Assembly: GCA_009103225.1 (NCBI GenBank)
Contig: RHPI01003389.1
Coordinates: 663,162 to 727,161 of the forward strand
From: Chlorokybus atmophyticus
Taxonomy: Eukaryota; Plantae; Mesostigma and Chlorokybus algae
Reading direction: 5' to 3'
DNA: 64,000 nt
Positions 8,873 to 46,305 of the stretch are shown piece after piece (within the stretch, counting starts at the first letter, position 1; each line of letters opens with the position of its first letter). The notes under the pieces were generated by a model, which did no database searches, had not been told where the DNA came from, and saw only the letters and a program-made list of their open reading frames with translations. Position numbers and translations under genes: made by a program.

Positions 8873-10268
8873 CCGAGTCCGTTGTCATAGTTGAAGCTAG
8901 AGATGCAAAATTGGATGATGTTGCTGTTGGATACTGCGTAGTAGGTTCTGGTGTAGTTTAGCTGTCTGTCGGACCAGCTGTAGCTATAGACAAGGCATTA
9001 ATAGCATTATCAGTGGTCTGCATCATGTCGTTCATCATATGGTGAACTTGCTGTAAGCGCAGCATCACTAAGTCAAACAACCGCGATGTCATTATGGAAA
9101 ACTCGTCAATAATAAACACTCGACAATGATGTAACAACTAATACATCATCCATAGCAGTTATAAACCGGAGTTGCTGACCGTTGACATGTATTGCGAAGT
9201 TGGAATGTACAGTTGAAGAAAATGAGCTGAGCCGCAAAGCCGCAGAGCCAGTTGTAGCACTGAGTAAAACATGTATCCCAGCAACGCGCAACTTGTAAGT
9301 GATGAATTTGGTCAAAAATGTTTTGCCTGCTCCTGAAAAATCAGATATTACATGTAGACCAACCGGTGCTGCAATAATACTACTTGCGGTGCGTTCTTGC
9401 TGGCTGGTCAAAGACAAATTGTTCATAAACGCAAACTCCTCAACATTCAAAGTACCTTGAAACATATATAGGCGCTGATACATCCGAGTCCGTTGTCATA
9501 GTTGAAGCTAGAGATGCAAAATTGGATGATGTTGCTGTTGGATACTGCGTAGTAGGTTCTGGTGTAGTTTAGCTGTCTGTCGGACCAGCTGTAGCTATAG
9601 ACAAGGCATTAATAGCATTATCAGTGGTCTGCATCATGTCGTTCATCATATGGTGAACTTGCTGTAAGCGCAGCATCACTAAGTCAAACAACCGCGATGT
9701 CATTATGGAAAACTCGTCAATAATAAACACTCGACAATGATGTAACAACTAATACATCATCCATAGCAGTTATAAACCGGAGTTGCTGACCGTTGACATG
9801 TATTGCGAAGTTGGAATGTACAGTTGAAGAAAATGAGCTGAGCCGCAAAGCCGCAGAGCCAGTTGTAGCACTGAGTAAAACATGTATCCCAGCAACGCGC
9901 AACTTGTAAGTGATGAATTTGGTCAAAAATGTTTTGCCTGCTCCTGAAAAATCAGATATTACATGTAGACCAACCGGTGCTGCAATAATACTACTTGCGG
10001 TGCGTTCTTGCTGGCTGGTCAAAGACAAATTGTTCATAAACGCAAACTCCTCAACATTCAAAGTACCTTGAAACATATATAGGCGCTGATACATCCGAGT
10101 CCGTTGTCATAGTTGAAGCTAGAGATGCAAAATTGGATGATGTTGCTGTTGGATACTGCGTAGTAGGTTCTGGTGTAGTTTAGCTGTCTGTCGGACCAGC
10201 TGTAGCTATAGACAAGGCATTAATAGCATTATCAGTGGTCTGCATCATGTCGTTCATCATATGGTGAA
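8432..10268. repeat. Three apparently identical tandem copies of a 611-bp unit inside the Helitron helicase N-terminus
   Basis: Units start at 8432, 9043 and 9654 and end in TGAA microhomology at 10265-10268. Identical 125-aa ORFs at 8495, 9106 and 9717. Confidence 0.95.
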
Positions 10269-10269
10269 T

Positions 10270-21187: not shown

Positions 21188-21210
21188 NNNNNNNNNNNNN
21201 NNNNNNNNNN
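21188..21210. other. Assembly gap (N run); further Ns at 24334-24397, 26116 and 47256
   Basis: Runs of n in the sequence. Confidence 0.97.
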
Positions 21211-22169: not shown

Positions 22170-24560
22170 CTCTCTCCTTGCGCACCTGTGCACACGCATG
22201 CATCCGCTGAGTTGTGTGTCCATGTGCATACAGAGGCGCCAGCAAATTCCATTAAGCACATACTTGTATGCGGTGGTGAGGTCATGGTAGATAGCTATCT
22301 ACCATGACCTCACCACCGGCCTCATTATGTAACACACACACAAGTGCGCGCGTGTGCGCACGCACGCTCACAACGCTTTATTTACACATACACCACTCTC
22401 TACTTCACCTATCCCTCTTCTTCGCCCCCTTCCCCCACCCCGCAGAAGCAGAGTCCTGTCCTCCACGACACCTCAGCCCCTCCTCCTAGCCCTGTCCTCC
22501 ACGCTCCCCGCCCCAATGTCACCTTTTCCACCATCAGAGCAACCGCGCTCAAGAATGCGCTCTACATTGGGTGGAAGTGAGGGGCAGAGTAAGAGCGCGC
22601 GCACGCACGTGTGTGCGCATGCGCACGCGCGTGCGTGTTTCAAGATAAAAATGCACCACCCCTCTTGACAGTGTTCGCGATTGGCACCAGCACAGTATGC
22701 GCTGTGAACAAACCGAAGCGCGTGTGTGCGTGCATGCGGACTGTATCCCCCCCCCCCCCTCTGTTCGTGGTTCCCGCTGCACCGTCCGGGATGTTGCTGA
22801 GGAGGCTGGTGTTGACAGCGATCAAAGCCATTGAGGTGAGGAACACCACGTGAACAAAAGTAAATATTTTGCATGCACGGTTAAGCGCGCGCGCTTTAGT
22901 TTGCAGCCTGCACTGCACAGATGTATATGTCTATGTTACCTGTCTCGTAGGTAGTCAATACTCACAGCATGATTCGATCGCGCTCAGTCACATTCACACG
23001 CACACTCACGTCTGCAAGCACACAGCATGTACATCCATACAAATGCACATGTACGTATCATTGATTAAGCCGTACATCACCCGTGACACGCTATTCACCT
23101 GTCTTAGATACATAACCATCACGCACATGAGCGCGCCTGCATGCAGTCAGCCCACATATGCCAACCAAACGCTTCAAGTGTAAAGCCCACACATCAGCAT
23201 GCATGCTAATGCTTCGCTCACCGATACATGCACGCAGTCCCCCCCCCCCCCCCCCCATCTAGCATGGACTCTGGGCNTGCATGCACACAAACGCACTTGC
23301 TGTAGAGGGGCGACAGCAGATGGTCTCTGTTACCATTTGAGATAAATTGTGACAGACCTCACTCATCGCAGCGTCTTTTGCTACTATAGCCTAGTTATTC
23401 GGAGCCCACTTGTTACAGTCTCCACCAGCACAACGCCAAGGTAGAGTGACACGCACACGCGCACATATAGCTCGTACAGTCCTTCATTGTCGCTCGCATA
23501 TTCTACGCGCACACATACACTTGTGCAAGCATCAGCACGTAGCCACGCTTCTGCATGCACAGTGATATGTGGGCATGCGGACAACTGAGTGCCTGCACGC
23601 AAACATGCATTGAGGACATGCAAGCACATGCACGCTTCGTGCAAGCACACACGCACCAGCATGCATCTGCACACATGGTGCAGGTCTTCTTTTGCTGCCG
23701 TCTCTGTTAACAACGCCACTGGAAGCGTGCATATGCATGTGTGTGTGTAACTTCTAGGCTGAGCCCGTAAGTTATAGACACACAAGCATATACACGCTGT
23801 GGTGGCTTGACGGAGGGTCCTCGAAGCTTGGCCTCTCCCGACCGCACGCAACAACACTGCAATGACTATGAGGCCTTCATGACCTCGTGCAAGTGCGTGC
23901 GCACATATGCATCTGGGTATGCGCGTGCCGGTGTGCAAGGAGTTTTGAGGACATGATGCTCTTCTACACCTGCGTTACACCGTTCATGAGCAGCCCTTTG
24001 GCTTAGCCACCACCTCCACCTACATCCTCGCATGTGCATGCTCTCTCTATCTCATTCGCTCCTTCCCTCCATGCGCGCCCTAAGCGCATGCGCGCGCTTG
24101 TGTCTGCGTTGAGTTGTGTGTCTGTGCATACAGAGGCCCAGCTGATGCAATTGAAATTCGGCACATTCATGTATGCCATCTACCATGATCTCACCACCGG
24201 CACCACTAGGTATAACACATGCATACGCACGCACGCACGCACGCACGCACGCACACAACGCTCTCCACTTGCCCATACACCATTCTCTACTCCCCTCCCC
24301 CCCCACCCCACCCCACCTCTCCCCGTGCTTCCCNNNNNNNNNNNNNNNNNNNNNNNNNNNNNNNNNNNNNNNNNNNNNNNNNNNNNNNNNNNNNNNNGCT
24401 TTCACTCTGCCCCCCCCCCTATCTTACCTTCCACTGTTACGGCGGCCTCTTAGACTTGCGCTCTACATTGGGCGAAGGTGAGGGGCAGAGTGAAAGCGCG
24501 CGCATGTATGTGTGCGCATGCGTGCACGCGCGCTGGGCCGGTGCATGCATGCATGAATTG
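22170..24560 (+). repeat. Two diverged copies of a ~450-bp repeat (~22170-22620 and ~24080-24560) embedded in microsatellites
   Basis: Shared tgagttgtgtgtc..tgtgcatacagaggc, atctaccatga.ctcaccaccggc and gcgctctacattggg..gaag.tgaggggcagagt. The second copy contains an N gap. Confidence 0.8.
22271..22318. repeat. Perfect 48-bp palindrome
   Basis: cggtggtgaggtcatggtagatag|ctatctaccatgacctcaccaccg. Confidence 0.95.
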
Positions 24561-25664
24561 CCGCACATGTGTTGTTTGCGCTAGTACACATGCTGTCATG
24601 CCAACTACCCTCGCATGCCAGTCTTCCTCGAGCATGCCAACATCCAGCCCTAAGCCCGGGCTACCAGCATGAAGACCGCGCGCGCCCCAGCCTACTGCAA
24701 GCTGTTTTGTACTTCATGTAGCATGTAGCTAGGGCTACTCTATAAACCTCTCTGTAGGAACCGCGCGTAGCTGATTAGTTAGGAATCTGTTATCAGCTCA
24801 TGTATTATATCGAGTCTTAGGGGATTCCCGTAGTATCATACGGCCTCGATGTGACCGTTGGCCTACTGCCCGCGTGGCACTGCACAGTCATGGATTGACA
24901 TGTATACGTAGGAAGTCACGTCACTATACTCGCTGGTGACACGGTGAGTGAGTACTAGGAGTAAAGACTCCAACTTTAAAAGCTTGTGAAGCGACTTGAA
25001 CTGAAAGCACACCGTCCCGGTTGCCAAGGACTGCCTTACTGCGTGAGACACAATGTATGCTCTTATGCGCTGTGCTTGTCATTGCTGCGAGCTTGGCGGT
25101 GGTGTGTTTGCTGCATCAGCCAAGACATAGCATCCCTGAGTTGCTTGTTCATTTACCTCACTCAACAGTGTAGCACATCATTCACTCATGCAAAGAATTG
25201 TGTATACATCAGTACCTATTGTAGTAGCTTGTTGACTGTGTGTATTACAGCACAATAGGTACAGTAAGGAGGAGAGCGTCACCAGCTCCACTACTGGTCA
25301 GATCCTCACATAGGTTCATCCCTAAGCCTATGCATATGTCTGGGGGGTGTCTTTGTTTGTGTTGCTCTCATGCTGCGCGTAGCACCAGCATGCCCACGGC
25401 ATGGGCGCTCGTCTGCAGTGTGCTCAAGACGGCGTGACCCTCGACTATGGCAGGCACGACAATGCGCTGCATTCAGCATGTTCATGCATGTGTTATGCAA
25501 GCGGGGGCCATGTTGGTCATTGAAGAACAACATCAGTATCAACGACAGCGGTAATGCGTTGGGTTCTGCTGTGCCACTACCACCGGGCAGTTGCGCTTGG
25601 CCTCTACACTGACCACCAAGAGCACCACTCTCATCGGCAGAGACCCCCGTCATGGTATGATCTG

Positions 25665-26115
<451 letters not shown>

Positions 26116-27107
26116 NGTCTCTGTCTGCTTCCTCCCTTTCACTAGCTGTTGTTGCTTGCAGGCAGTGAAGCTGTATGGTGCTAACAGGTGTTGTCAGCAA
26201 TGCGTTGGCCATAACATAATACACTGGGCCTAAGCTGGCAAAGCGCAGGTATATATAATATCCTCATTTATGTTGACATCGTGTTGGGATAGTCATGCAT
26301 GTTCATGGGCACATGCCATGAGCACATGCCAGAGTCTGTGCGCGTGCGTGCGCCTGCCTGCAATTGAGCACGTGCGCAAGCACGTTTGCACCGGTAATTT
26401 TAAGCCCCCCCGATTCCTGAATTTTCAGACTGTTTGGTCTGAATAGTCAACAAAAACAGGGGTGAATAGCATAGAATACGGCGTCCCTAGCTCCTGCCTG
26501 TCAGGGTGAATATTCAGACTGTTTGGTCTGAAAGGTGTTAAAGCCTGTTCAATGTAATTGTCGGTGAATATCCCTGTGGCAATTAGATTGCACACTAGTC
26601 CTATATGTGGGGCATTTATTCACTTGCAGTGGAGCTGTACATTCCACCTGTATGGTGTAGTGCTGTGACCATCACATGTACTACACCACCACTTACAGTC
26701 ACCCAAAACTTTCACTTGCAGCAGAGTTGAATATTCACCCTGTATGGTGTGGTGCTGCAACTGTACTACACCACTGAATATGCACGCATGTATTGTTTGA
26801 ATACTCATAGTAATCTAGCCTGCACACTAAGTCCTACATGTGAGTAGTTATTTAATGGCAATGAAGTTGAACAATGGTAAGCTGCTGTTTTACGACCGTC
26901 AATGTTACTATGAATGTTCAAGTGATATTAAGTAGAACAAGACCGATATATGCAGTGCTACTAAAAATATTCACAGCAGTCCGTCCAGCCAGCCCAGCAA
27001 TGTCAGCTGAATGGCAGTCGACTTACAATAACACATTCAATGCTGTCTACAACGTATGTCTGCTACCCAGAGCTGCACTTGCAGGTGGAAATCTCCTGCG
27101 GCAATAT

Positions 27108-30100
27108 CTACTTCCTGCTGCGCCCCCGACCACCCCAACTCCCCTTCCCACGGCCTCTCCCCCGCGGTGTGGATGTGCCTTCCTTTGCTGGCAGCTCCCT
27201 CACCTTGATGGTCTTTATCAACCTAGTAGGCCAAAGTAGCAACAACCCCGCCTCGCACTCTTCACATGCATTAACCACACATGAATACGTCAGACGCAGT
27301 GTGTTGTCATAACGCACGCACAGTCAACACGCAATCATCGTTCACCTCTCAAGTGGGTCGCTTGCACTCCAACCCCATCACGCTTGAAGCTGGTTGGCAA
27401 AGGCACAACCTCTTCTTCCCCTGCACCAGGACGTCTGATCCTAGTGATGTGAAGACTGCGGCTAAACTGGACCACCATGTTACCCTCTCAAATCTGCTTG
27501 CCATAAAACTTGTTGACGGGCTTGATGTCGCTTACGTGCGCCTCCCCTACTGGCTCCTTGCGCCCATCGATGAACAATTTGACTTCATCACCAACCTTCA
27601 TCGTCGGTGCAGTGTCATCCTTGTCGCTCAGGTCTTCCTGCGCATGCAAGTGACAAACACATCAACTGGCAGACACATACACAGATGCACTCTCCTACAT
27701 AACGCTTGCAAAAAAAAACTGCCTTTTGGGAGTCGTTGTCGCTGTCGTTGGGGCTGTTTGCATCGTCCTTAGCGCCATCTTCATCGTTAGCGTCGCTTTT
27801 ATCTGTCTCGGATACTTTTGAATACGATGGCTCATCCTGTGCAACCAGGTGGCACGCCGCGTTATCAAGCTTACAATTGATAGGCATGCATGCGAGTCTG
27901 CTGCAGTGACAGCTTTTCTGCAACCAGAAGGACTCAAGAAGCCTATAAGCGCACATAGATGGTCCTTCATACCTCCTTTTGCTTGCCCCTCTTTTGATCC
28001 AACATCTTCTCCTGCTTGCCAGGCGAGGGGCCTGCCTCTTTAGACTTGTAGGGAGCCGGAATTGAGCGATCAGTCTTTGCTTTCGTTTGGGGGCTTGACA
28101 CCTCAGTCTCCTGCTAACAGCATACACATTAGATTGTAAGCCACAACGTAATGCTATGCCATTCATTGTGAAACAGAGTGGTGCGTACATCACCAGACAC
28201 TTTGCGCTTCCCTTGCCCTCTGCCTTCCTTTTCTTTCATGAGCTCCATGACATTCGCGGCGTCCTGTGTCTACATGTGGTGCGGTTTCTGTTGCAAAAAA
28301 TTGATATGCTTGTTAGATACTTGCTCCAGTCGTTATTGCATACCTTAAGTGCTGAGCTGGTATTACGCACATCAGCATCCTGTTTGGCAGGTGCCTGAAC
28401 ACAACAGTCATGATGACATGTAAAGGAGAGTACAAGCATTTGGCTGCTCGTGTAATGATGACAGACATCTAACCAATGAACCAGTAGCGGGTGACCTTGT
28501 GGGTTGTGGCGCAGTGCCTTCCTTGTTACCTACCGCACGCACAAGGCATTGATCAGAACAGTGTATACACAGAACCTCCCGCAGCGGCCCGCGCGCGCAA
28601 AACATGGCTCACGCTGCGAGGTGACATGTCGGTCGTCGCTGACGTTGCTGGCGGGAGGTGAACGCGTGGGCGCCGTGCATGCACAAGGGACTATCATACA
28701 CACCTCACACCCTGCATACATAAGGCACCATTAAACACAAAGCGTTTCGTTCTCAACATAGTCATTTACCAAACCGTAGCTCACCCTATGAGGTGGCATT
28801 CTCGACGTCGCTGGCAGAGTGGTGCAGCGAGGAGCTATCTCTTGCCTTTGACTTGTCTTTGACCTGCAATTATGCATGGCAAAGGCACTTAAGACATGCA
28901 AACATTGCACAGACAACTCAGTCACTGCATGGCACACACCTTGTTGTTCTTGTCCCTGCGCGCTCCCTTGCGCTTTCGCGCAAACCCCCCTGCTTCAGCG
29001 CGCTCTATCATCTCCTTGTAACGTTCCCTACTCTTATGTCTCTGCCTTTCTTTGTGCTTGGCGTTGGTATATGCCTTTTTGTTGGTAAGAAAGTCCTGAA
29101 TTATCATTATCATTATCGTTTTGGCCTGCACCAGGCCCAGAGTGGTGATTGCCACCGAATGCAAAATCCTTCAAGCTTAAACAATGTTGCATAACAGCTG
29201 GTGACACTCTCACAACCTTGCCAACCTTTTCATGACGGAACTCTGGATGAAGTAGATGCCAGCATGTAACTGCAAGAGCAAACTTAAGTGGGTCCTGCTT
29301 CGTATGAGTCTTCCCCGGTAGCAAACGACAGTACTCATAGCAAATCCGGCCCTTGTCCGCCAGCTTTGTAATATCGCGGCGATCACTGGTATGATGCTGG
29401 CCACGCCAATAAAGGACCTTTAGTGCCTGCACAGTGCAAGTATTGCATACTAGAGCTCTGTTACAACAATATCAACAGTGTGAGTTGCTTGTGCAAACCT
29501 CAGAAATCAAGACAGATTTCGGCAGCACATGCTGATATCGACAGTGGTTGCTTGCACATCATTGTAAGCTCACTTTCAAGGGCATCATTGCTGTGGTCTC
29601 AAGGTCGCGGAGGTGAGCCGTCTCCTCAGATTTTTCCCACTCATGCTGGAGCTGCTCATCTGATGGTGCACCAGCACTTTTGCCCCAGATCTCATCGTCC
29701 AAGTTTTCCCAGCCTCCACTCATGTCGCTAGACCGCCCACCAGACGTCGTGCCTGACATGACCACTGCTCCACCTGTGTATTGAGTAGGTCAAACTAGTG
29801 GGTCGAACTGCTTGTCAAGCTGTGCACAACCGCAACACTGTTCAACCAGATACCCTTAACATCAAACCCAGCCCCGTACAGACCCATAGCAACGCTACCG
29901 GCACCACAAAAGATATCCAATGCGCGTGGCCTGTAACGTCTACCGCTTGAGTCGCATGGTGTGCGAGTTACGAGAAGGGGTGGTGGCCTGGGCCAACGAT
30001 CGAGCTCGCGACCAGGCAAGTCTTGCAGTCTCAGACAGCTTTGACCACCAACTCGAACCATCACTGCAACGACATCTTGCATGCTGTAACCCTCACGCAC

Positions 30101-30897
30101 AGCTGCTTTTTTCCAGTTTTTCAACAAGATGTGGTGCAGCCGCGGGTCCTTATCGTAATCGTCGTGCTCGATGGTATTTCCTGAGCCACATGTTTTACTG
30201 AGCCAGTGCTTGCGTGAACACGCGCACGTACATCACATACTCTGCATTATTTGGACACATGTACCTGTGTTGGCATTGAAAGTAATGATGCGGCCTGCAT
30301 ACCAGGTGCTCATTCTAGGCCAGTATACCACGACGCGGCTTGCTACCAAAGACTGCCCCTCATCAACAATCTCCTTTCGCCACGCAGTTATTATCGCGGT
30401 ATCGTCAACTGCGTCAACTACTGCTACATTCCCCTTCAACATTGAAAAGTGAGTTGCTTACGTATGAGAGCGCTGTTTGTGCGCCAAAACAGGACAGTTC
30501 AACTCACTTTGTTGTTGTGATCATGTTAAACTGTGGACTTGCCGCGACCGTTGCGCGCGAGCTGACGTCGCACCACATCACACTCCTGCCCATCCTGATA
30601 TGCTCAAGGCTGGGCCCAAGGCAGGTGATCCATGAGCTCGCCGTCCCACTCAAACTTAGAGAGCGAGCATTGCAGGCAAGTGCATTCCTCGACAAAGAAG
30701 TCTGGCTTTATGCATTTTGCTAGAAGCCTGCACTGCCTCACATTATCTCCACGGGCCTTATGGTGCCAGCAGGCTTCATAGAAGCCATACTGCTCACTGT
30801 ACAGCTTGCACTTCTCTTCATGCTGTTGCAGCCGTTTCAAGTTGCCGTTTCTAACTAAGTATGCTCTGCAGAAACTGCACACCTTGACGCCGCACAT
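27108..30897 (-). pseudogene. Spliced TnpA-like gene of the En/Spm element: Cys/His-rich N-terminus, Tudor domain, C5-methyltransferase motif I, C-terminal Tnp1/DUF8039-like domain
   Basis: CSFC...CWHH (30897-30740). GQSLVASRVVVYWPRMSTWYAGRIITFNANTG|NTIEHDDYD (Tudor, ~30370-30150). RALDIFCGAGSVAMGLYGAGFDVKG (29926-29854). KVGDEVKLFIDGRKEPVGEAHV...FYGKQI*EGNMVVQF...PLP and GLLLLWPTRLIK (27640-27190). Several in-frame stops. Confidence 0.7.
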
Positions 30898-31236
30898 GCT
30901 GCCGCCACGCAAACTACCATTCAAACCCTAGTAGCTGATGCACTTCACGGAAGAAAAACTGGAGCACGTACGCAAACTACAGAGCACATCCGGATTGAAG
31001 CCGCGGCTTATATTGAATCTGGCTTTCAGTTTAGGATTGACGGTTCCAAACCCTAATTCTACAACAGCGATGCTAGAGCGGCGGCGAAGGCGGCGGTATC
31101 AGCGGCGGCGGCGGCGGTATCAGGTCAGGGCTCTAGATAGTTTGGTGGTTGTATGCCAGGATAATAGTTGACTAAACATCTTTGTAGCATGAGCTACAAT
31201 CGTAGGTGTTTCTGCGAAGATTGCTAAGGGAGCAAA

Positions 31237-34200
31237 GTGTTCACACACAAGCACATCACTAGGGCCAAAAACCATGAGTACCATCGCACAAGGATGTGGA
31301 TGGGCACTCCTAAAGCTGTTGAACCGCAATACCGTGATCTTCTCGAACCCGATGAACTTGAAGAAGCTGACGCTGTTATTGCTGCTGCATCCTCGCACAT
31401 GCTGTCAGGTACAAGAGTAATCTTCCTGAGTTGGTGTACTTCATCAACAGGCTGTCTGATTACCAAGCTTGCCTGCTTCAGATGATGCTGTCCATCACAC
31501 TGAAACACTTCATGCATGGAACTACGCTGCTGAACAACTGCACCGAGCCACGCCATTGCAAACGAGTGTTGCATCTCATGTCAATGTTGCACATTACATG
31601 CGCCCAGCAGGTACGACCCAATCTAATTGCAAGTTGATTGCTTACGTCATTGTCCATGTGCCAGTGCATTTATTCGCATTGACAGGATGTCATTCGTGTG
31701 ATCATGGGGAACAGAGCGAATTGCACCCAGCATTCTCTGGAAGTGAGCATTCTGTATCGCGAGGATATCAAGGTGCCAAAACTCCAGAATACACAGTTCC
31801 GCACGAGCATGATATGCCAGCGCACTCCCCCTCAACCGCTAATGAAGTACATGCGGAGCAAGTTGATAGTGATGGTGATGGCGTAGACCAAGACTCCGAT
31901 ACCGATGTGGAGTCGCTGCAGTATGACACTCATGGTGATGACGATGCAATGTTGCTTGACAAGGTGAATGCTGCGCTGTTGGACAATGTAAGCAACCCTA
32001 TCGTTGCCGGCTCTCGTACAACCCCTTTGAACATTTCCATGCTGCTATTGGTTCTCGCTCAGCTACATCGAATACCCTTCAACTTCATGAACAAACTGCT
32101 AAGGTTGGTGGGCAAGAGGTTTGCAAAATTATATAACACACATTCTGCAAAGACATCAATGTCCAATTTCCAATTGAACCTGACTTTATGTGCCAGGTTG
32201 GGCGTGATGTTGTTTTGTCCAAGGAGAATCAGATGCCAGGCAGCATGCAAGAGCTACTGAAATGCCTTGCAAGCCTCAACATGGGCTTCCACGCGTATGA
32301 CGCCTGTTGGTGTGATCACATGGTGTATTATGGCCGACATGCCAACAGGAAATTTTGCAAAGGTCAGCTATTGTAGCATTTCTTGTGTGATTGAGTTGTC
32401 ATGGGATCACCTGTCAGCATGCAAACTACCTATGGCCTGCAGTCTGCAAGGCTCCTCGCCACCGCAACATTGGAGGCCGACAAGTTCCTTGGAAGATTGC
32501 ACGTTACTTTGACGTGCCTGCTGCTGTGAGGTCTCTTTACCAAAAGCCTAGTGTCGCTTTGGAGATGACAGCGCACACCAATCGCAGTGAGGATGGGGTT
32601 ATACGATCCATACACGATATGTATATGGCAGTGTGGATTGACTAGTTGATGCCCAATGCAGCCTGAATTCTTATATGTTTACTATTATTCATGTGGTTGC
32701 TGCTGTCAGACTCGCCAATGTTCAAGCATACAGAAGAACGCTACATCCGGTTTATTAAAGAACCGCGTAATGTGCGGCTGGCAATGTTTATTGACGGGAT
32801 GAGCCCTTTCAAAGATCCGCACAAAGGTAGTGATTGTGCCTTTTACCTGTGCTGTCATTGCAGTGTGTAAATTCACAGTAGGCAGTGATCGAGGTGTTTG
32901 TGGACTTGCAGGGAATTATGAATTATGAATTTTGGCTTGTCACAATCTCTGTGCTGAACCTGCCCATTGCCAAAATGCACAAGATCGACACTACCTTTCT
33001 AGCTGCGGTGATACTTGGTCCCAAACAGCCAGAGAATCTACAGGCCTATCCCAAGCCAATCATTGACCAGTTGGGAACCCTTTGGGAAGGTATGGTTTCA
33101 ATGTAGTTGAAACAAGCCAGCTCTTGATATATTAGACATGCTCTCAAATTGCTCTGGACTGGAATGTGTAGGGCATCTCAGCTGCCGGTGTTTGTTGTAG
33201 GCATCGACATATATGACGGTTACCGCGACGAAGTTTTCCGGTGCAGATCTATCTTGAAGATTGTAATCCATGATTACCCATGTACGCAAGCAGCAAGTGT
33301 TGGCCATCAGTGTCTATGAATGTACTATCTGACTGGTATGGCAACCATGTTTGCCTTCTCTAAAACATGTAATGATGGTTGCGCAGCTCTGGCAAAAGCC
33401 GCCATGCAGATGGCTCATGGAGCCATCTTTGGCTGTTCCAAATGCGAGTGCAGTGGAGAACATGTGGAACTCCTCAAAAAGGTGATTTATCAAGGCTACC
33501 GCCGGTACTTACCAGATGACCATCCCTACCGAGTTGATGAGCGTTGGCCCCAACCAGAACACAGACCTCCACCTCCCATGCGGACTGCAGAAAGTGTGTA
33601 CCGGTGAGCAACCAATCAATTGACATAGCTGAACGTAGCTATGTCAATCAAGCTTCACCAATGGATGCCATGTGATCAGGTACGCCATGACATCCCGCAA
33701 CAGCAAGCGACCACTTCACTCCAAGAAACATCCATCAAAGTCCTCCGGAATCCTTAGCCTAAGCTGTTTTCACGACCTTCCCTATTTGATGCCTTTACAG
33801 AAATCTGTAAAAGGTCATGTGATTGGCCCTATGCACATTTTTGCCAATCTCGCAACCAATTTGGCCAATCTGCTTGCTGGATTGCGCGACAGCAATGAGG
33901 CTCGAGAAGACCTGCAGCAGCAAGGTCGTATGCCAAAACTCCGGCTACAGGTATTGCAGGCTTATGCGACACTTGTGATGACTGCCTGCCAACTCGTGTG
34001 ACTTTGTGATGATGCGTTGCAGACAGAGATGATGGCGAAAGACGGAAAGGAAGTTGCAGTTAAGGTCAAACCTCAGGCTTCATGGGCAATCACGGATGCA
34101 GGGCTGGTTGAGCAATTACTCTCAGGCGTGAGGGTTCCAAGCACTTTCGGCTCCAAGCTGCAATCTTTCACCAAGCATTTAGGTGAGACAACCACCATGG

Positions 34201-35800
34201 TCCTCAACTGCGTGCAAATCAACTCAGTGTCCTTGCATTGCACATTGTGTCTATTTTTAACAATCTGATGTGATGAGCACACAGGCTCGATGAAATCGCA
34301 CGACAAGCACAACTTGTGGTCCGTGATTTTTCAGTACGTGCTGCGCTCTGCTCGTGACATTGGAGAAGATCAGAAGAAAACAATCCTCAAACTCTGCAAC
34401 ATCTATCAGCGGCTGACTGCATTGGAAGTGAAGCAGTCACACCTTGAAAAACTGCAGGTTTGGGCTTTAACTATACCTTCCATGTGTATGCTTAGCTTCT
34501 GCAGGTTGCATGACTTGCATTATTCATTGCAGGTGCTGGTGCATGAGGCACAGAATGAGGTGGAGCTGTTGTTCCCGCGGACTTCGCTCACAATGATGCT
34601 GCACCTCCTTGGCCATCTACCAGAGCAATGCATGTGGCTTGGTCCGGTGCGTGATCACTGGGAGTGGGCCGACGAACGATTCATGCAGTGGGTGAAGCGC
34701 ATGATTTTTGCCAGGCAGCATGTGGAAGCAAGCATCTGCAAAAGGCAAGTCTGGGCCAACTAAAAGTTGCATGCAACCTTTTTCGTACTCTCGTTCTTTG
34801 ACTTGTGTTAGCTGCAAGTTATGTCTGCAGATACTCCATCCAGCTCATGTTGAACACTTACATGGACACCTTAAAGAGGCTTTTCTTCGGCATCAGTCTG
34901 CGATCGGGCAAGGAGCGAGATGATGATGACTATGTCCTTTGCGGGCGCAGACACCGTGTTGAGTGTGAGAAAGATAGCAAGATCAGGCAGGAGCTGGAGT
35001 GGTGGTTGGCCGAAAATGACGATGAGTACAGGCAGCTAAAAGAGTAAGTTGCTTTAGCAATCGTTGTTTGGTACGCAATGTCCCCTGCACATTGTGACTC
35101 CACAATGGGTTGGTAAACAGAGAATTCAGTCGGGCTGTTCAAAAACGGCGGAAGACATGTGAAAGGGCCCAAGCACAAGGGAATCTCGTGGCCAGTGACA
35201 TGGAGCACATGACTGAGCTGCATCATTGGCGTGGACCTGATAAGGAGCTTACAAAACACGAGATGGAGCTGTTGAGTGGTCCCATTTTTCCAAAGTACAT
35301 CATAAGGTACTACAGAGCGCGCTACAAGGACATTGGCCAGTTTAGAGCAGAGGACACTGAGAAGAAGCTCCGCACTATGGACTGCGGAGTGGTTACCGTT
35401 GGGCGTGACTCAAATGACCCAACCAAGAAGATCCACTAGTATGGCAGGGTGCGATCTTTTGATGTTGTCGTGGTAGCCGGTTGGGAGCACCAGCTCCTCA
35501 GAGCGAGGTGGTACATGAGCAACCAGGTGCAGCACATGGGAGGCTTTGCAATCCTGAGGAAAGACAAGCCCCGCTTTGCAGAACAAACCTACCTTGATTG
35601 CAACCTAGTAAGTAGGTGTGTTGCAGCGGTTTTTACGAGTTGATGGTCGAGTGAGATTGGGTGATACATGTCCTTGCTGGCAGGTCAAGGGCCAGTGGTT
35701 TGAGGGTATTGACCCGTATGACACCAAAATAACAGTAGCGCTTGTCAAAGATCAGCGAAGCCTCATGTGCCGAGGTGTGCACCGCGACACTCCGGTGAGA
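31237..35800 (+). pseudogene. En/Spm TnpD transposase (Transposase_21 + DUF4218 + DUF4216-like), multi-exon, partly degenerate
   Basis: MPGSMQELLKCLASLNMGFHAYDAC, IARYFDVPAAVRSLY, EPRNVRLAMFIDGMSPF, NLPIAKMHK..ILGPKQP, VIHDYP, YRRYLPDDHPYR, PMHIFAN, MKSHDKH, GPVRDHWEWADERFM, KGQWFEGIDPY. Catalytic D/D/E positions are recognisable. Confidence 0.93.
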
Positions 35801-36021
35801 GCAGACTTATTTGTGAGAATCTGGGTGTCCTCATAGTTCCCGGGTCTTGGCATCACATACAACCATCTTGTGTACATGCATATGGTGCAGGGTGACCACA
35901 GCGAAACCAACAGCGCTTCGAGCGAGGTGTCATGGACCACACGCCGTGACTGGCATTTTGAGTATATGAGGTACTCTTTGCTATTGTGATGCTGCATATA
36001 CCTATTGTTGTGTGACTGCAG

Positions 36022-36558
36022 ATCTGGGCACCTAACTTTGGTTTGCATGATGAGACCGGGGCTAGAGCTGGATGCATTGGAGAATCGTGAACACGAAGAC
36101 TATTGCTTTGTCTGCAAGGATGGCGGTAACATATTCGGCTGTGATGCAGAAGGCTGCTGGAAGAGCTACCACGCACGCTGCGTCACTGTACCACCTGTGG
36201 AAGATGACCATTGGGAATGCCCAAGGCACAAGTAAGCTTCAGTATCTAGTGAATGCATGGTGTCTGAAGTCGACAAGTCTCAAAATGATCACTGAAACGC
36301 AGGTGCCATGTGCACAGATACAATGAACCAGCTCGACAAGTGTGCGCGACATGCCCAAACAGCCTCTGTCAACGTCATGCTGTTGGTAACATCTTTGCGG
36401 TCACATGCTCGCAATGCGCTGCGTACGAAGAAGGTGGGACTCCGGCACAGCTTCCAAGGGATAGCCTCGCGCGTCGTTCTCTGCCGGGCAGCAGCGGTAG
36501 GGTTTCACAACCACCGACTGAGAGCGTGGGTAAAAGATTTGTTCAAGAGTGCGGGGAT
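36022..36558 (+). CDS. PHD finger plus partial C5HCH finger (NSD/NERD type) in the En/Spm TnpD gene
   Basis: EDYCFVCKDGGNIFGCDAEGCWKSYHARC...WECPRH (exon 36022-36231), spliced to CATCPNSLCQRH (exon from 36318). Interrupted at 36558 by the nested element. Confidence 0.88.
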
Positions 36559-38593
36559 CACACGGATTGACGTTCGGCGACCATGCATGGTCCTTCCACG
36601 GACCCCGCGGGCCATACATGGTCCGTCCCCGCGGACCACGAGTGTCTGGTCCGCGAGGGACGGACCGTCTATGGTCCTTTTTGGGCCCCAACACCTGGCG
36701 CGCAGTCGCGCACCACATATGGTCCGTGCCGCACCTTGTATGGTGCGGCACGGACCAGTACTCTACGCTGGTTCCTGGATGCGGACCAGGAGTAAGCCCG
36801 CGGCTCAGCGGCCCGGCAGCCGCGCACCGTACATGGTCCGTGCCGCACCATGTATCGGGCGGCATGGACCAGCAATGTTGCTGGTTGGCGGCCTTGCAGG
36901 GCGCGCTAGACGTGTACCATGACTGAAGTATTGTTATTGCATTGTGTGTATCATCATTTAATCAATGACAGGCCGCACCGACTGTCGCCGCTTACCATAA
37001 AGTGGACAGTCGCAAATGGTCGGCGGCTGTCAATGTATGTTGACAGCCGGCTGTCCATGTACATTTTAACTTGACAGCCGCCGACCAGTTGCGGCTGTCC
37101 ACTTGTGGCCTATATATGTATATATGGATATGTGTATATATATAGATATATGTGTATATATACACACATATATATATGTATATATATATGCGCATATATA
37201 CATATGTATACATACACATATGTGTGTGTGTGCATGTAGGTGTAGGCTTAAGGCATTTACGAGCAAAAATTGTCGACATATTGCACCGCAATTTGCAGCC
37301 TTGCAATTACTTCATACCTATAATTTTATGTACATACATTGTTGTAAGTATATTGATGCGCGTACACATGTGCATTTAGACCTGTTATATATATATGCAA
37401 AATTGCGTACGTTTAAAGTACTGTATAACAACATGAATATACAAAGTATTATAATTATTCATAATAAAATTAGCGTAAATACTAATGTTAAATTTACATC
37501 CATGCGTAGCGCGTGTTTATTATATTATATATATTTTGTTGGTCATCACATTATCATAATGTTCACAACCGTTAATATCATGCCATGAATACATATGTTG
37601 ATGCTGTTCGTATGTTGCATTAAGGGTAGTTTATAGTAAGTTTAATGTAACGGTTTATATGAAACGAAAGCAATGTCAGATGTTATGACTTATAGCCTTA
37701 CTTGTATAACCTCATTAATGGCCTATAAAAGCCTCATGCGACCACAGCATCATCGACAGCCCGATAAGGTACACTGGCTGCATTGACAGTCGCAATCTGG
37801 CTACTATCGCTAAGCATTGTCACAATGACAGCCCCTAACAAGTCTACAAATTGTACTGGCCTATTAACAACCGCCGAGTTCGCGGCTACCGGTATGTAGT
37901 TTACCACCGTCCATGTAACTGGTACAGCCTATGAATGCTACAGTTGCATGGGCTCAGCCTATGGGCCTATCAAAGTGACAATCTCGACTGTCCATCGGCA
38001 ATTACTGCCGCCGGCCAACAGTCGCCAAGCGGCGCATGCAACACTATATGACATAGGTTGCCATGCGACCCTACCGGTACGTGCACTTGTAGCTTAGTGG
38101 TTAGGGCGTCGTCTTTGATATGCTAAAGGTGCTGGGTGCGAATCCGGCCGATGCGTGTGTTCTTGACTAATCATTCCACTAACGTCGCGGAGTTGGCCGC
38201 GGCCTCGTGCGCCGCAGGTTGGGTGTGGCCGGTGCCGCCGGCAAAGATATCTCAACTTTTACTGCATTTGCACTCATATACACATTGGTCCATAATAAAA
38301 TACGGTCCATGGTCCGCTGGCCGGACCAGTTATGATTGAAGTATTGTAATAACATGATTTAATCCCTTGTCCGATGGCCGGACCATACCTGGTCCTGATG
38401 CAACAATAATCGGCCGGACCTTGAGTGGTCCGTACTAAGGAACAATGGTACCATTCACGTCATATTCGGACCATGAATGGTCCGACTGTCCATGAAAGCC
38501 GGACCATACATGGTCCGTCAATTTCACTTAGCAGGGGAAAATCCCGGTCCTGCGTCACGGACCATTCATGGTCCTTGAACGTCAATCCGTGTG
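36559..38593. mobile_element. 2,035-bp non-autonomous CMC/En-Spm-type element with CACAC termini, nested in the coding exon
   Basis: GAT|CACACGGATTGACGTTC ... GAACGTCAATCCGTGTG|GAT: 17-bp perfect TIR (~35 bp imperfect) and 3-bp TSD GAT. Dense GGACC..GGTCC subterminal repeats at 36575-36870 and 38290-38575. AT-rich core with (TA)n. Confidence 0.93.
37002..37102. repeat. 32-bp inverted repeat pair (hairpin) inside the nested element
   Basis: gtggacagtcgcaaatggtcggcggctgtcaa (37002-37033) versus ttgacagccgccgaccagttgcggctgtccac (37071-37102), two mismatches. Confidence 0.9.
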
Positions 38594-39736
38594 GATGAGG
38601 ATATGAGTGGTAAGCAGCAACGTGCTGGCGCTTCTTGGTTTGCGTTGCGGCGCTTCTTGCATAATCCTACCTTTTTACGCTGCAGAGCCAGTCCCGATGG
38701 AACTTGATGATGAGGATGCCAACGGGGAACGTCGCCAGCACCCAAGTTAGGGAACCACGACGGCTGCAGCAGCTGTGGACCTCGTGGACAGCGATGATGA
38801 CATCATGGTGCTGGACGGGCCGGGTGCTGAAGTTGAGGCGTCAACACTTGTGCCCCTGTTCATTTACCCTAGTGCAAATGCACGTGATGCGGTGCCAGTG
38901 TTTAAAGCGGACAGAAAGTTGCTGGACGGCAGACAGGAGCTCAACGACACTGTGCTCCACTTCTTTTGCAGGTATGAGCCTTGCGTTGTTGGTGTTGTGC
39001 AGCTGTGTCATGTATGTGTCGCTCACGCGCAGATATAAGGAAGAGGAGGTCGTGGGCAGAGCTGACGGCATTCACGTGAGGCTGTTCAACCCGCACTCTT
39101 ACATCAAGATTGTGCATTGCCATGAACAACATAATTGGCACAATGGCAATCACAGGATATATAGGTGGGAGAACGATCCGTTTTCCAAGAACTTGCTGGC
39201 AGCAATTGTCAACCCAGACAGTCGGTGAGAGTGAAGCCAAGTTCTCGCACTATAGTGCTGCTGTACTTGCTCGCATGGACTCACTTTGAAGTCTGCATGC
39301 CACAGGACTCACTGGAGTCTGCTGCTGGTGTGCAATCCTGGAGAGGAACTTGGAAGCAACACGCCGCCCTTGATCGTCCATCTCGACTCCCTTGGTCTAC
39401 ATCGCAACGTCGACGGACCAATGCGTGCTTATCTAAACTATATGTGGGGGCATGAAAGTGAGTGGCAACAGCGCTTCTCTCCCGCAAACGTCCCGCTACT
39501 TGATCCACAGGTAGGACATGTTGTTTTGGCCTGATGATGAGGTCACGCTCTCTCCTGGCACAATCCCTATGTAGATGCACATACGTTTGGTTCGCCCGCA
39601 TTGACATAGCGTGTTCGTGCAGGTCCCTCAGCAGAGGGATGGGGTTGCGTGCGGGCTGTTTGTCATGGTTTACCTTGACAAGTTTATAGATGGGATACAA
39701 GCTGGTCCAATCAAGCAAAACGCCCCAATATCTTAG
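38594..39736 (+). CDS. ULP1/SENP-type (C48) cysteine protease domain at the 3' end of the En/Spm TnpD gene
   Basis: Exons 38594-38609, 38686-38971, 39033-39224, 39306-39510, 39623-39736. LFIYP..AVPVFKAD..LND, catalytic His (THWSLL), Asp (HLDSL), Gln/Cys (PQQRDGVACG). One premature TAG at 38748-38750 in the linker. Confidence 0.9.
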
Positions 39737-42736
39737 TAGGTACAGCTCATGCATTGGAATGTATCCATATGGCAGCTGCCTTAATGCAAAGTCGTGTAGG
39801 TTGACATGTGTTGAGCAACCAGATGGTGTGGGTGTGTGCAACTCAGATGCAAAAGGATTGGTTTCGTCCAAAAGAGGCAGACAACTTAAGGAGACGACTG
39901 CGAACACTCATGGACAGCATTCCAGCACAGCAAACGTCACGGCGGATGTGAAGTAGCAGGCGGTTGGTACATAGCTAAACTGTGGTCAAGAGCACAGGTT
40001 CATTGGCCAGCTGTGTAATAGTAGCCCAAGCTAACTTTGTGCTTAATAGAATTTAGATTGCAAGCAATTAGCATGCTTGCCTTTTCAATGGCACTTGGCA
40101 CTTGGTGTAATTTCACAGCGGCAGTTTTGCCAAGTGGTGTTGAACATTCAATGGCACTTGGCAATTGGTGTATTTCATGCTATATATTCCCTGAATATGA
40201 CGGTGACTATGCAATGGTATTTAGGATTCAGGGTTTTCGCGGCAAGCCGTAGCCAGCACCACACACGCTGGGTAATTATTCTGCTGTTTGGGCACTGACA
40301 ATTCATTGTACCATATCGTTCATCAAGTACAACTTGACTGACCTTGAATATGCACGAAATACTCAGTTTAAAATTCAAAGCGTACGGGTTGAAACGAGGT
40401 TCAGTGGTATGTACGTTGAATATGAATGCGTCTTGCGGGTGAAGAACGCTGTTCCTTTTAGCAGGGATGGGACAGAAAGTACAATAACCATTGGATATTC
40501 ACGGACAAAAGGCGTGAAACGGATCAAGTCATTAATATTCAGACGAAATGGCGTGAATGATCAGGACTTGGGGGGTCCCAAAATTACCGGTGTTGCTGCC
40601 GCTTGCTGAGAGATCACTGACGCTGTACGCGGACATACAAGCACATCTTGGGCACGCATGCACACGCACAAGCTAGGTTGCATACCCTGCCTGGCTTGTG
40701 ACCCTGGATTACACCCCCGACTTACACCCCCACGCACACACTCACAAGTACGCACTCATGCTCACCCAGCTTGTTGCTCAACCTGATTAAACGCAACGAC
40801 GGCAACACATTATATACCCTTCAGGTGACTAGGAGCCCAACAAAGTGCGTATACGTGTCTGTGAGTGCCTGTGCGATCAAGCAGGTGTGTGCGCGGGTGC
40901 GTCTACATGTGCATGTGCATATGTGTGATGATATCATAAGATCTTGTGCAATAATATGCATGAGTGCGTTGATGTGTTCGTGCATGTTCAAGTCATGTGC
41001 ACTTCAGTTATTGTAACGATGTGAGGGTGTATGGGTGTGCATATCGTTCATGTGCGTGCATGTATCAGTCTGTTCGCCTAACCTTCAACTTCGCCAATAA
41101 AGTGTGCATGATGTCATCATAGCACGAGGAGGCTACCTTCTTGTAGTTTTTGTTGTTATGTGCACCAGTAAAGCGTGTTGCTTGTTGTAGCATAAGGGGG
41201 CTATCCATGCTGCTTATTTATAGACCATTAACATGTAGCAGCATACGTATGAAATTGCTTGTGAATAGCATATCAGATGACACATGTATGACACAGTGGT
41301 ATGTCGGTGTCTTGTTGACAAATCTTAACGAGTATAGCAACATGTATCAATTGTATGGTACTGCACATTTGCGCGCATGCTAGTACTGTTACGAAAGACA
41401 AACTTGCTTAGTGCAAGCATGTTGTTTAAGGAAACTTTATGTGATCGATTGCACTAATTAACATGTTATATGATCATTGCAAAAAAGTTATTCAAACGCA
41501 TAGCTTTATGCCAAGGTAAAGTGTTTAAATATTTTAAAAAACACACATGCTACATTACATATATTGCATAGACAATTCGACAAGTTAAATCGACAATTTA
41601 AATATAGCTGAATTATTAATGGCTTGAGTTGCAGTTTGAATAAGGCATTGGATGCCTTGTTAATTGTGGAATCGATGCATTATTTTTTGGGTCATTATAG
41701 CAAAAAGTTGAAATGAAAAACATATCGCAAGAACGAGTGTGGGTTGTTATATATGTGTCTCCACGGAATATATAAAACATGAGATAATTTGTAACGAATG
41801 TACACATAGGTTACATTGGTACTGATGTTTTAATTTTGTATTAAATTATCATTGATTGACATTGAAGTGTGATTGTATATCAGCCTCTTGGGTGTAACAT
41901 TGTACCTAGTAAACCGTTGGTTTGAGTTTTGAACACTAGGGTAAGTGTACCTAACTTCGGACGATTGCATAACTTCGGACAGTTAGCGCTATAGCCTTCT
42001 AGAGACGGTATTTTGTGTGCTATTGGCGGCCAAAAAGGGTGCCTGGTAGCTTATCGTGTAGGTATTAGCCTATCCTGTGCTCTCCTTAAATTTGAGTGTG
42101 ATTGGTTAAGTTTTGGCGCTAGCACACCTCTTTAGCTGTCCGAAAATTTCTGCGTCAGCATGGTTGGGTGACTTTGAACTTTCAAGGATAGTGTTTAACT
42201 TGACCAGTCAAAAGGCTTGATAGCTCCAGGGGTTGCCACTGTTGTGTAGTTAGTGCGCCCGAAATGGTTAGGTTACTGGAGACGTCATTAATAAGTTGTG
42301 GCGGGAAAAGTGCGAGTGCGGTGAAACCACTTGTGAGTGCATTGTGTTTGCGCTAGACTGTTTGTGCAGTATGTGTGTGTGTGTGAGGGCTGCTAGTGGG
42401 GGTGGCTGTTGGGTGGCGGCCTGGGCTGCTCTGTTGAGTAGCTGGTAGTGTAGATGTGTGAGGTGAGGTGCTGAGGTAGGTAGGAGCATACTCACATGGT
42501 GTGCACACGAGGGCCACAAGGCACACGAGGCACTGAAGATTGGGATGCTGGCACAGAGATAATATTGCAACCATGTATGCGTGCTCATATCTTACTGCTG
42601 CTCGTATCTTACGTGCTAAACCTAAACCTCACTATGGGTTCAGGGTTCTACACCTGCTGCAAGTGGCAAGCGTCCAAGCAGGACACCTTCAGCGCCTGGT
42701 CCTCTTGAACGTGCACGGGGGCGCAGCAAGCAGGCC

Positions 42737-45195
42737 ATGCGCAGTCTTGCTGGTCTCACGCACCGCAAGGGCATGCGCTACATCAACTACCATGGCCAAG
42801 GGTTGATGCTGAAGCTTGGGGTTGCTGTGGAAGATGTTAATATGGGCATGAGCTTAAGGATTGCTGCAGCAAAGCATGGAGTTCCTCGCTCTACCCTATT
42901 CGATTACGTTACCTTACCTAAGAAGCTGCAGCTGCCGCATGGTTGCGGTCGTAAACCAGTGCTTGCTTGCACGGAGGAGGAAGAGCTTGTAGCATGGTTG
43001 ACTTGGATGGCAGACCGTAGCGCTGCTGTAACACGCCCTGCCCTGTTACAAAAGGTTCCTCCGTTACTTGACTGCATGGTTGCTTGTATGCGCTAGTGTG
43101 AGATGTTGCAGTGCTGTGACTTACCTAGTGTTGCAGGTGGTTGAGATGCTGAAGGGGGATCCAGCACAGAGGATGAAGCGTTTTGGGCTGCGTGGCGTTC
43201 CGGGCTATAAGTGGCTGCGCCTCCTAATGAGCAGGCACAACCTGTCAAGTCGCGTAGTGGAGGGGCTGGATCGCAGGAGGTGGCAAGCTTGCACCCGGGA
43301 TAACGTTACCGCCTTCTTTGAGCTGTATGTGAAGACCCTTGATGAGCTTGGTATTAATGACCCTACGAGGATCTTTACTGCCAACAAAACTGGGTTCGAG
43401 CCAGACAACCTAGGTGAGACTGAGAGTTAGCAGTGTGAAAATTTGCATGCATGCAATGGCTGACTCACCGTGTGTCTTGCCAGGTACCGTGAAGGTGATA
43501 TGCAAGAAGGGGTACAAGAACCCCTACTACAATCAGTGTGGCAGCAGGGAGCACATGAGTGTGATGGCTTGCGTCAGTGCGGTGGGCTAGTGGATGCCTC
43601 CGTTCTACATCCTCAAGGGCTCTCGCTTCACAAAACTACATGGATGCAGCACCATATGGAAGCTATATGCGTATGCAGGAGAATGCATACATGACGGTAG
43701 AGCTCTTTGTGGACTGGTTTGTCAAGTTCATACCTGGTGGGGTGAGCGTAGACAACCCAGTGCTGCTGCTGCTTGATGGTCACTCATCTCGGATGAACCC
43801 GGAGCTATTGGAGAAGGCCCGCTGCATGGGAGTGCACATGCTCACCTTCCCTCCTCACATGACGCACCTGATGCAAGTGAGTGCACAAGATGGGTTCATG
43901 CAATGCGTGAGTGATTGCACAAGATCATGACACAGATGCCACTTCAGGTCCTGGATGTCAGCTGCTTCAGGGCTCTGAAACAACATTACCGCACTGAGTT
44001 TCTATCTTGGCGCATGGAAGACCCCAGCTGCCCCATCACCAAGCTCAAGTTCGTTGAGTTGACTGCAAAGCCATTCCTATTGGCTATGACGCCAGCCAAT
44101 ATTGTCAGCGGATTCACAAAGACAGGTTAGTTGAGTGAATCACACGCACATCACATGCATTGTGCATGCACAGTGCACAATGCATGCACAATGCAATATA
44201 CATAGGTTTACATATGCAGGTGTGTGGCCTGTAAACGTGCACGCACTAGACAGCAAAGTTCCAGAGATGCGCAAGCCAACAGCAGAGGATATCACACCTG
44301 ACTTGGCACATGCCCAAGCCCAGCACGAGTTTGGTGGACTTGCTCTGGATGGTGAGGGCGTACCTGTTAACCTTGAGGAGGAAGATTCAGACGCAACATA
44401 AGACGAGGACAGCACCAGTGATAAGGAGAATCATGAACCTCCTGCTCGAGGACCTGCTATCAGCAACGTCAATATCACCAACAACAACAGCATCAACATC
44501 AACAACAACAACCACGTTAACATCAACATCAATGGAGGGGCTGGCAACAACACTAACATTACATCAGGAGCGCAGCAGCAGGGGGATGGGCAAGGGTGGA
44601 GAAGCAAGCCAGCCAAAAACATTACACTCCCTGGTTCTGTGTGCCTTACATCAGAGGGTTATATCAAGGCCTTGCAAGCCAAAAAGGATGAGATTGAGGC
44701 CAAGAAGGCTGCAGTGGACGCACGCAAAAAGGCAGCAGCAATCTGGAAGCAGCTTGGCAGAAGGAGGTTGCTGCACTGCAGAGACAGGCTGCCAAGAGTC
44801 AGAGAGAGCTTGCTGCCTTGCAGAAGCAGCATGCAAAAGCAGATAAGGCTGCTGGCAGGCAACAAAAGCTGCTAACACAGCAAAAGCAGATTGCGCATGC
44901 TGGCCCAACTCAAATCCGCACCAATGCAGGTCACCTGCACGGTGCCAATCCTGTGATTGTTGACCTTGAGACACAAGGTGGGCAACCTCAGCGTTATGAC
45001 AACCCACTGCTGGGTCTCAGCCCCATGGCCAGCCCAATTGGCAGCCCACAACACACGCATGTCATGTCCATGTCTCCCACACCTTCAGAGATGAGAGATG
45101 CCAACCGAGTAGTGGATGCCAGCGTGGCAGCAGTGGCAGCATCAGCACGAAGCGTTCTCAACCTCAGGGCAGCTGCGCGTAGACACTATAGGTAG
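42737..45195 (+). pseudogene. pogo/Fot1-like DD35D transposase, spliced, degenerate
   Basis: SLRIAAAKHGVPRSTLFDY (psq-type HTH), EEEELVAWL, FTANKTG (first Asp lost), LLLDGHSS...FPPHMTHLMQ|VLDVSCF (35 residues between the Asps), IVSGFTKTG|VWPVN, CLTSEGYIKAL. TAG at 43588-43590. Confidence 0.9.

Positions 45196-45733: not shown

Positions 45734-46305
<572 letters not shown>

Follow-up and report, generated by a model that had tools for sequence, protein, structure and literature searches.

A probable defective CACTA/En-Spm transposon of Chlorokybus atmophyticus with CACCG ends, an NSD-type PHD-C5HCH tandem and a predicted ULP1-type protease

Introduction

Plant CACTA/En-Spm transposons are documented carriers of the Peptidase_C48 domain, which is found in their second open reading frame (ORF2) together with Transposase_24, for example in Jozin-type elements, and the tendency of plant CACTA elements to pick up host fragments has been discussed in the same work (PMC8978399). 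A C-terminal Ulp1 domain has been described on other DDE transposases as well, namely Ginger1 in Hydra and Mutator in several phyla, and in Ginger1-9_HM it is accompanied by a PHD finger (Bao, Kapitonov and Jurka 2010, PMC2836005). Across eukaryotes, fusions of transposon domains, those of DNA transposases included, with chromatin domains most often involve PHD and Chromo, and chromatin tethering is the role proposed for such reader-transposon fusions (Grau-Bove et al., bioRxiv 10.1101/2021.11.30.470311). Here, we analysed a stretch of 64,000 nucleotides from Chlorokybus atmophyticus (GCA_009103225.1, contig RHPI01003389.1, positions 663,162 to 727,161 of the forward strand), hereafter the window. 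It contains a 14.2-kb interval that had been predicted to be an En/Spm-type transposon with chromatin-related cargo, and that is, in our reading, probably a defective element of this type whose plus strand encodes a TnpD-type transposase followed by an NSD-type PHD-C5HCH tandem and a putative ULP1-type cysteine protease.

Results

Ends and boundaries of the element

The window contains just two exact copies of the 13-nt sequence CACCGGTAATTTT, a plus-strand copy at 26389-26401 and a minus-strand copy at 40580-40592, and the outer flank of both is the trinucleotide TTG. An exact inverted 13-mer is by itself little evidence in this window, which holds 1,472 such pairs, mostly within microsatellites. 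The inverted repeat stretches past the 13-mer to 57 nt at 77% identity, with 31 of the 44 positions outside the exact core matching (binomial P ~3e-10). When the 1,472 pairs were screened for a CAC start together with a 3-bp flanking duplication, only two were left, those of the 14.2-kb element and of a smaller element nested in it. Moreover, the motif (G)TGAATAT was concentrated near both ends of the element in both orientations. The two terminal 600-bp stretches held 12 of the 25 TGAATAT sites in the window and seven of the ten GTGAATA sites, six of the latter being located in the left 600 bp. Because the repeat extends to 57 nt, starts with CAC next to a 3-bp duplication and is accompanied by terminal clustering of (G)TGAATAT, we regard these positions as real transposon boundaries. 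In the right subterminal region, a 29-nt repeat (TTCAATGGCACTTGGCA.TTGGTGTA.TT) was also present in two copies 63 nt apart (40084-40175), with no counterpart at the left end.

The element starts with CACCG, of which CAC alone agrees with CACTA/CACTG. CAC is the portion of the ends that is conserved across the wider CMC superfamily, so the CACCG ends tell against the narrow plant pentamer but leave membership of the superfamily unaffected.

A TnpD-type transposase on the plus strand

All domain and homologue searches were done exon by exon. On stop-free pieces at 32.1-34.8 kb of the plus strand, Pfam Transposase_21 matched four colinear segments (profile 8-207), one of which passed the cut-off alone, and DUF4218 was found in the same region at 4.4e-10. 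Distant TnpD-like proteins retrieved from a large protein library aligned colinearly across 32394-34787 by tblastn, and the stops that separate the transposase pieces fell mostly within short introns, not in coding sequence. No Transpos_assoc domain was detected in the element. We also considered an alternative genetic code and rejected it, as the in-frame stops include both TGA and TAG and most of them lie in evident introns. Around the in-frame TAG described below, a possible DUF4216 match was likewise discarded, being supported neither by Pfam nor by phmmer against the retrieved relatives. The original prediction of an En/Spm-type transposon with exact inverted ends, a TTG duplication, non-canonical CACCG termini and a TnpD transposase therefore holds on the ends, the identical flanks and the transposase alike.

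An NSD-type PHD-C5HCH tandem and a ULP1-type protease

Further 3′ on the transposase strand, Pfam PHD_NSD was found at 4.9e-7 (30.4 bits versus a curated cut-off of 23.9), and the best PDB match of this exon was PHD5 of NSD3 (2.2e-12). The exon after it matched C5HCH at 2.4e-4, its 21.7 bits lying under the cut-off of 26.3. The PHD exon aligned with residues 7-55 and the C5HCH exon with residues 60-89 of the same NSD2 chain, 9gbf_A. Because the two exons match consecutive parts of one chain, we conclude that an NSD-type PHD5-C5HCH tandem is present.

Peptidase_C48 was detected on two colinear exons, 39256-39531 (profile 95-120) and 39605-39733 (profile 160-188), at E ~0.0065 each (16.7 and 16.8 bits; whole-protein cut-off 20.7). 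Frame reading recovered the ULP1 motifs in order, with the His in HWSL, the Asp in HLDS, the oxyanion Gln in QQ and the Cys in ACG, and the typical N-terminal LND..FF motif was located upstream of them. The protease, encoded on the transposase strand inside the element, is accordingly predicted to be catalytically plausible. Both the PHD-C5HCH finger and the ULP1 protease that had been proposed for this locus were thus confirmed, the former by a PHD_NSD score above the cut-off and a colinear C5HCH match, the latter by the two colinear C48 exons with all four catalytic-site residues in place.

The exons between 34844 and 39735 could be linked by hand through GT..AG introns of 51-97 nt whose phases agree, with GTAAGT, GTGAGA or GTAAGC as donors and CAG as acceptors, and the only stop in this chain was a TAG at 35437. 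From these features we infer a single transposase-PHD-C5HCH-ULP1 protein, an arrangement as in some Ginger1/Mutator transposases. Splice-chain models varied with the parameters and were not taken to prove the fusion or to count the lesions.

A nested element and an in-frame stop

The strongest indication of a dead copy had escaped the original prediction. A nested element of 2,035 bp (36559-38593) carries exact 17-nt inverted ends, CACACGGATTGACGTTC, which reach 35 nt at 89% identity, and is flanked by a GAT duplication (36556-36558 and 38594-38596). Its ends read CACAC, and nine GGACCATnCATGGTCC palindromes were counted within it, all in its two ends. It is a non-autonomous, CAC-ended element of a different family from its host, so that En/Spm-like families whose ends are not CACTA number at least two in this genome. 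It also harbours a (TA/TG)n tract together with a 34-nt hairpin (37000-37104). The insertion splits the open exon that lies between C5HCH and ULP1, 13 nt 5′ of an apparent donor, and in silico excision of the nested element with one GAT brings the frame back.

In addition, a TAG at 35437-35439 breaks an otherwise open stretch of 162 codons (35122-35607). This is probably a nonsense mutation, and it could be bypassed only via an intron with weak splice sites. Neither Pfam nor phmmer against the retrieved relatives found homology for coding on either side of it. On the minus strand, an in-frame stop lies directly after the piece at 27491-27661. With the nested insertion and at least one likely premature stop, the copy is very probably inactive, its ends and target duplication being intact. 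This agrees with the earlier proposal of a probably dead copy carrying stops.

The minus strand

The locus had also been proposed to hold two divergent multi-exon genes, of which the domains proposed for the plus strand were confirmed, whereas the minus-strand gene lacked any significant domain match. The piece at 30236-30457 (SRVVVYWPRMSTWYAGRI...) matched chain 7de9_A (66 residues) over its first half at E 0.01; we take this chain to be a plant H3K4me1-binding Tudor domain. An 81-nt intron would append a second half with the pattern DD.D...L..W, at a length fitting a Tudor domain. This presumed second half (30059-30178) gave no match on its own, and the Tudor piece had no Pfam match and drew a blank in the word-indexed homologue search, so that the proposed Tudor domain is borderline.

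The stretch RALDIFCGAGS...GFDVKGI matched motif I and the next strand of generic class I S-adenosylmethionine (SAM) methyltransferases at E 0.055-0.4. C5 DNA methyltransferases were not among its matches and Pfam gave no DNA_methylase. Neither motif IV (PCQ) nor motif VI (ENV) occurred anywhere on the minus strand, and the word-indexed homologue search with this piece was also blank. It would therefore represent no more than part of a Rossmann methyltransferase, and its earlier designation as a cytosine methyltransferase is unjustified. The proposed TnpA-like C-terminus (27491-27661) fared no better: it had no Pfam or PDB match, and its motif resemblance comes from reading only. Transposase_24 was absent from every minus-strand piece in Pfam. 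The piece at 30607-30927 had the best codon-usage score among the minus-strand pieces, and no Pfam or PDB match. A candidate second DUF4218 relic at ~27750-28200 was rejected, the tblastn matches (E 0.007-0.6) coming from a single TnpD-like subfamily with the conserved core gapped out. An Arg-rich stretch aligned there with the end of DUF4218, and the matches are probably compositional. Overall, a divergent second gene is plausible, in line with the usual two-gene plan, and its content is uncertain.

Search for relatives

An exhaustive HMMER search with the DUF4218 exon against 1.84 billion protein representatives returned 129 proteins, all distant TnpD. No score fell below 1e-10, and the best protein showed 45% identity over 67 residues. 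The 59 longest contained DUF4218, Transposase_21 and DUF4216 only, plus one Transposase_24 and one Transpos_assoc. The end pattern gave 14 matches in metagenome contigs, all of them chance, and nothing related came up in protein-guided scans of viral contigs and prokaryote genomes. The search for sibling copies bounded by CACCGGTAATTTT, which the original prediction had suggested, thus yielded none that was genuine by blastn in the window or by end pattern in metagenome contigs.

Table 1. Features of the 14.2-kb element, in positions of the window.
Feature	Position	Strand	Basis
Target-site duplication, left, TTG	26386..26388	.	read directly, identical to right copy
Terminal inverted repeat, left: 13 nt exact CACCGGTAATTTT, 57 nt at 77%	26389..26445	+	repeat analysis
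Left subterminal region, (G)TGAATAT(TCA) motifs in both orientations	26389..26990	.	motif count
Stop-free piece, earlier labelled TnpA-like C-terminus	27491..27661	-	reading only
Methyltransferase motif I and next strand, isolated fragment	29846..29941	-	match to generic class I SAM methyltransferases
Tudor-like first half	30236..30457	-	7de9_A, E 0.01
Cys/His-rich stop-free piece, possible first large exon of minus-strand gene	30607..30927	-	reading, codon usage
TnpD-type transposase coding region, many short exons	32137..35607	+	Pfam, tblastn
Transposase_21	~32706-33601	+	Pfam
DUF4218	~34527-34751	+	Pfam
In-frame TAG	35437..35439	+	frame reading, splice models
NSD-type PHD finger, inside exon 36022-36231	36083..36229	+	Pfam, PDB match
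C5HCH-type Cys/His domain, directly 3′ of PHD finger	36319..36408	+	Pfam, PDB match
Nested non-autonomous terminal-inverted-repeat element, 2,035 bp, CACACGGATTGACGTTC ends	36559..38593	.	repeat and end analysis
ULP1/C48 region, ~4 exons	38770..39735	+	Pfam and motif reading
ULP1 catalytic sites	His 39310-39312, Asp 39385-39387, Gln 39629-39634, Cys 39650-39652	+	frame reading
Terminal inverted repeat, right	40536..40592	-	repeat analysis
Target-site duplication, right, TTG	40593..40595	.	read directly

Surroundings of the element

The window holds a host gene for the Golgi complex subunit COG7 at 51777-55785 on the plus strand (last exon 1.2e-32), which marks it as ordinary nuclear DNA from a short-intron eukaryote; the introns measure about 50-125 nt and have GTAAGT donors. 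Rfam and a tRNA scan were blank, as was the word-indexed homologue search with a flanking host exon. Several other mobile elements were found around the 14.2-kb element. A 340-codon open frame at 3-1022 on the minus strand, extending past the window start, matched DUF659 at 1.3e-17 and has a BED-like Cys/His N-terminus, features typical of hAT-related transposases. A Helitron-like element occupies 7540-12387 on the minus strand, with Helitron_like_N, PIF1 and Pif1_2B on consecutive pieces. Its PIF1 helicase gene contains three tandem units of 611 bp at 8432-10268 that are 100% identical and carry three identical 129-codon open frames, reflecting either a very recent triplication or an assembly artefact. 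Two pogo/Tigger-like transposase remnants lie on the plus strand, one at 19030-19710 with an HTH_Tnp_Tc5 match and one at 42626-43927 with HTH_psq plus DDE_1; 2 kb separate the latter from the right end of the 14.2-kb element. Two very long microsatellites were found, (GA)n at 25650-26100 and (CA)n at 45740-46300, the (GA)n tract stopping ~290 bp short of the left end of the element. Short runs of N, representing assembly gaps, lie at 21188-21210 and 24334-24397.

Discussion

We put the probability at roughly 80% that the 14.2-kb interval is a defective autonomous CACTA/En-Spm (CMC) transposon, of the cut-and-paste kind that makes a 3-bp duplication. The plus-strand gene would encode a TnpD-type DDE transposase, and the same transcription unit, or an adjacent downstream gene on the same strand, would supply the NSD-type PHD-C5HCH tandem and the ULP1-type cysteine protease. 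The PHD-C5HCH tandem may tether the transposase to histone H3 tails and so bias the place or time of its action. The protease may act on the transposase, or on host factors of repair or silencing, by stripping off SUMO or a related modifier, as has been proposed for Ginger1/Mutator. These suggested roles follow published proposals for Ulp1/PHD transposases (PMC2836005) and for reader fusions (10.1101/2021.11.30.470311). The divergent gene probably specifies an accessory protein that binds the TGAATAT subterminal repeats at the ends, like TnpA in En/Spm, and this gene may also encode a Tudor-like reader and a methyltransferase-fold remnant. The intact ends could let an active relative mobilise the dead copy. 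The original prediction that the family reads or counters host silencing is a reasonable speculation and is compatible with this mechanism.

Several observations weigh against parts of this picture. On the plus strand, either C48 exon alone scores under the Pfam cut-off, and an ATGATG at 36048 could begin a separate PHD-ULP1 gene. A dynamic-programming splice search yields a stop-free chain on either strand. Since the splice program always finds an open chain and this alternative start exists, we word the transposase-PHD-ULP1 fusion as a prediction. On the minus strand, Pfam detected no significant domain in any piece, and the codon-usage score trained on the plus-strand exons was modestly positive, which is weak support. 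As to relatives, blastn found no sibling copy within the window, no close relative was found in the protein-representative, metagenome, viral and prokaryote collections, and PHD, C48 or Tudor occurred in none of the 59 longest TnpD-like proteins.

A more ambitious version is that PHD-C5HCH-ULP1 and the Tudor-like second gene are conserved parts of a deep-branching En/Spm lineage, which would use histone reading and deSUMOylation for insertion-site choice or escape from silencing; we offer this tentatively and consider it rather doubtful on present evidence. If it were so that the module is conserved in the family, CMC would be the third DDE superfamily, after Ginger1 and Mutator, to have independently recruited PHD and Ulp1, the case for SUMO removal and histone-tail reading in cut-and-paste transposition or silencing evasion would be stronger, and the element would offer a natural system to study chromatin-guided integration of DNA transposons. 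At present it is one broken copy without known relatives, whose main value is as a starting point for assembling the family from the source genome.

Another explanation accepts a true En/Spm-type element and takes PHD-C5HCH-ULP1 and the minus-strand Tudor and methyltransferase pieces as Pack-type host captures in one copy or a small sublineage, with no role in transposition. The clearly fragmentary methyltransferase piece fits such captures, as do the absence of these domains from the 59 TnpD-like proteins and the known pickup of host fragments by plant CACTA elements (PMC8978399). Retention points the other way: all four ULP1 catalytic-site residues have been kept, the Zn ligands of the PHD finger are retained together with a 2.2e-12 match to NSD3, and both modules share the strand of the transposase, where they are in frame and have plausible introns. 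Moreover, the pair of PHD and Ulp1 recurs on unrelated transposases (PMC2836005), and this recurrence favours function over chance capture. We consider capture without function unlikely. That the ends are coincidental, and the interval a patchwork of an older transposase relic with a host PHD/ULP gene and a Tudor gene, is very improbable: inverted 13-mers are common in the window and neither a sibling copy nor an empty site is to hand, but the repeat runs to 57 nt with P ~3e-10 beyond the seed, a CAC start with a 3-bp duplication marks only two pairs, both plausible elements, TGAATAT motifs cluster at both ends, and the transposase sits centrally between them.

Compared with known systems, the element is closest in its basic plan to plant CACTA/En-Spm transposons (En/Spm, Tam1, CAC1, Jozin-type). 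It shares with them Transposase_21 and DUF4218, the 3-bp duplication, CAC-initial inverted ends, short subterminal repeats and, plausibly, a second gene, and some of these families also carry C48/ULP. However, its ends are CACCG rather than CACTA/CACTG, neither Transposase_24 nor Transpos_assoc was detected in it, and its putative second gene is divergently oriented. While the C48 domain of plant CACTA elements is in ORF2 with Transposase_24, that of the present element lies behind the transposase on the same strand, after the NSD-type PHD-C5HCH.

With Ginger1 and Mutator, the element has in common an accessory module that is placed alike relative to the catalytic core, a DDE transposase being followed by PHD and then by Ulp1. 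The transposases differ, those of Ginger1/Mutator being integrase-like or MuDR and that of the element TnpD/CMC, and its PHD is an NSD PHD5-C5HCH tandem in what would be a one-protein fusion. This tandem resembles that of NSD1/2/3, as indicated by the colinear matches to NSD2 and NSD3 chains, whereas SET, PWWP and other NSD domains are absent from the element, where the module sits in a transposon gene. In the survey by Grau-Bove et al. (10.1101/2021.11.30.470311), PHD is among the two readers commonest beside transposase or integrase domains, and the element likewise has a PHD. CACTA, EnSpm and CMC go unmentioned in the main text of that survey, and it describes no protease partner or second reader gene.

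The original statement that this architecture is undescribed was thus overstated, as Ulp1 transposases with or without PHD (PMC2836005), CACTA elements with C48 (PMC8978399) and reader fusions (10.1101/2021.11.30.470311) are all known. The combination of a chromatin reader with a SUMO protease is unusual for DNA transposons, yet precedented. What appears to be new is TnpD/CMC as the carrier of PHD paired with Ulp1, the occurrence of the reader as an NSD-type PHD5-C5HCH tandem and the CACCG ends, to which a second reader in the accessory gene may possibly be added.

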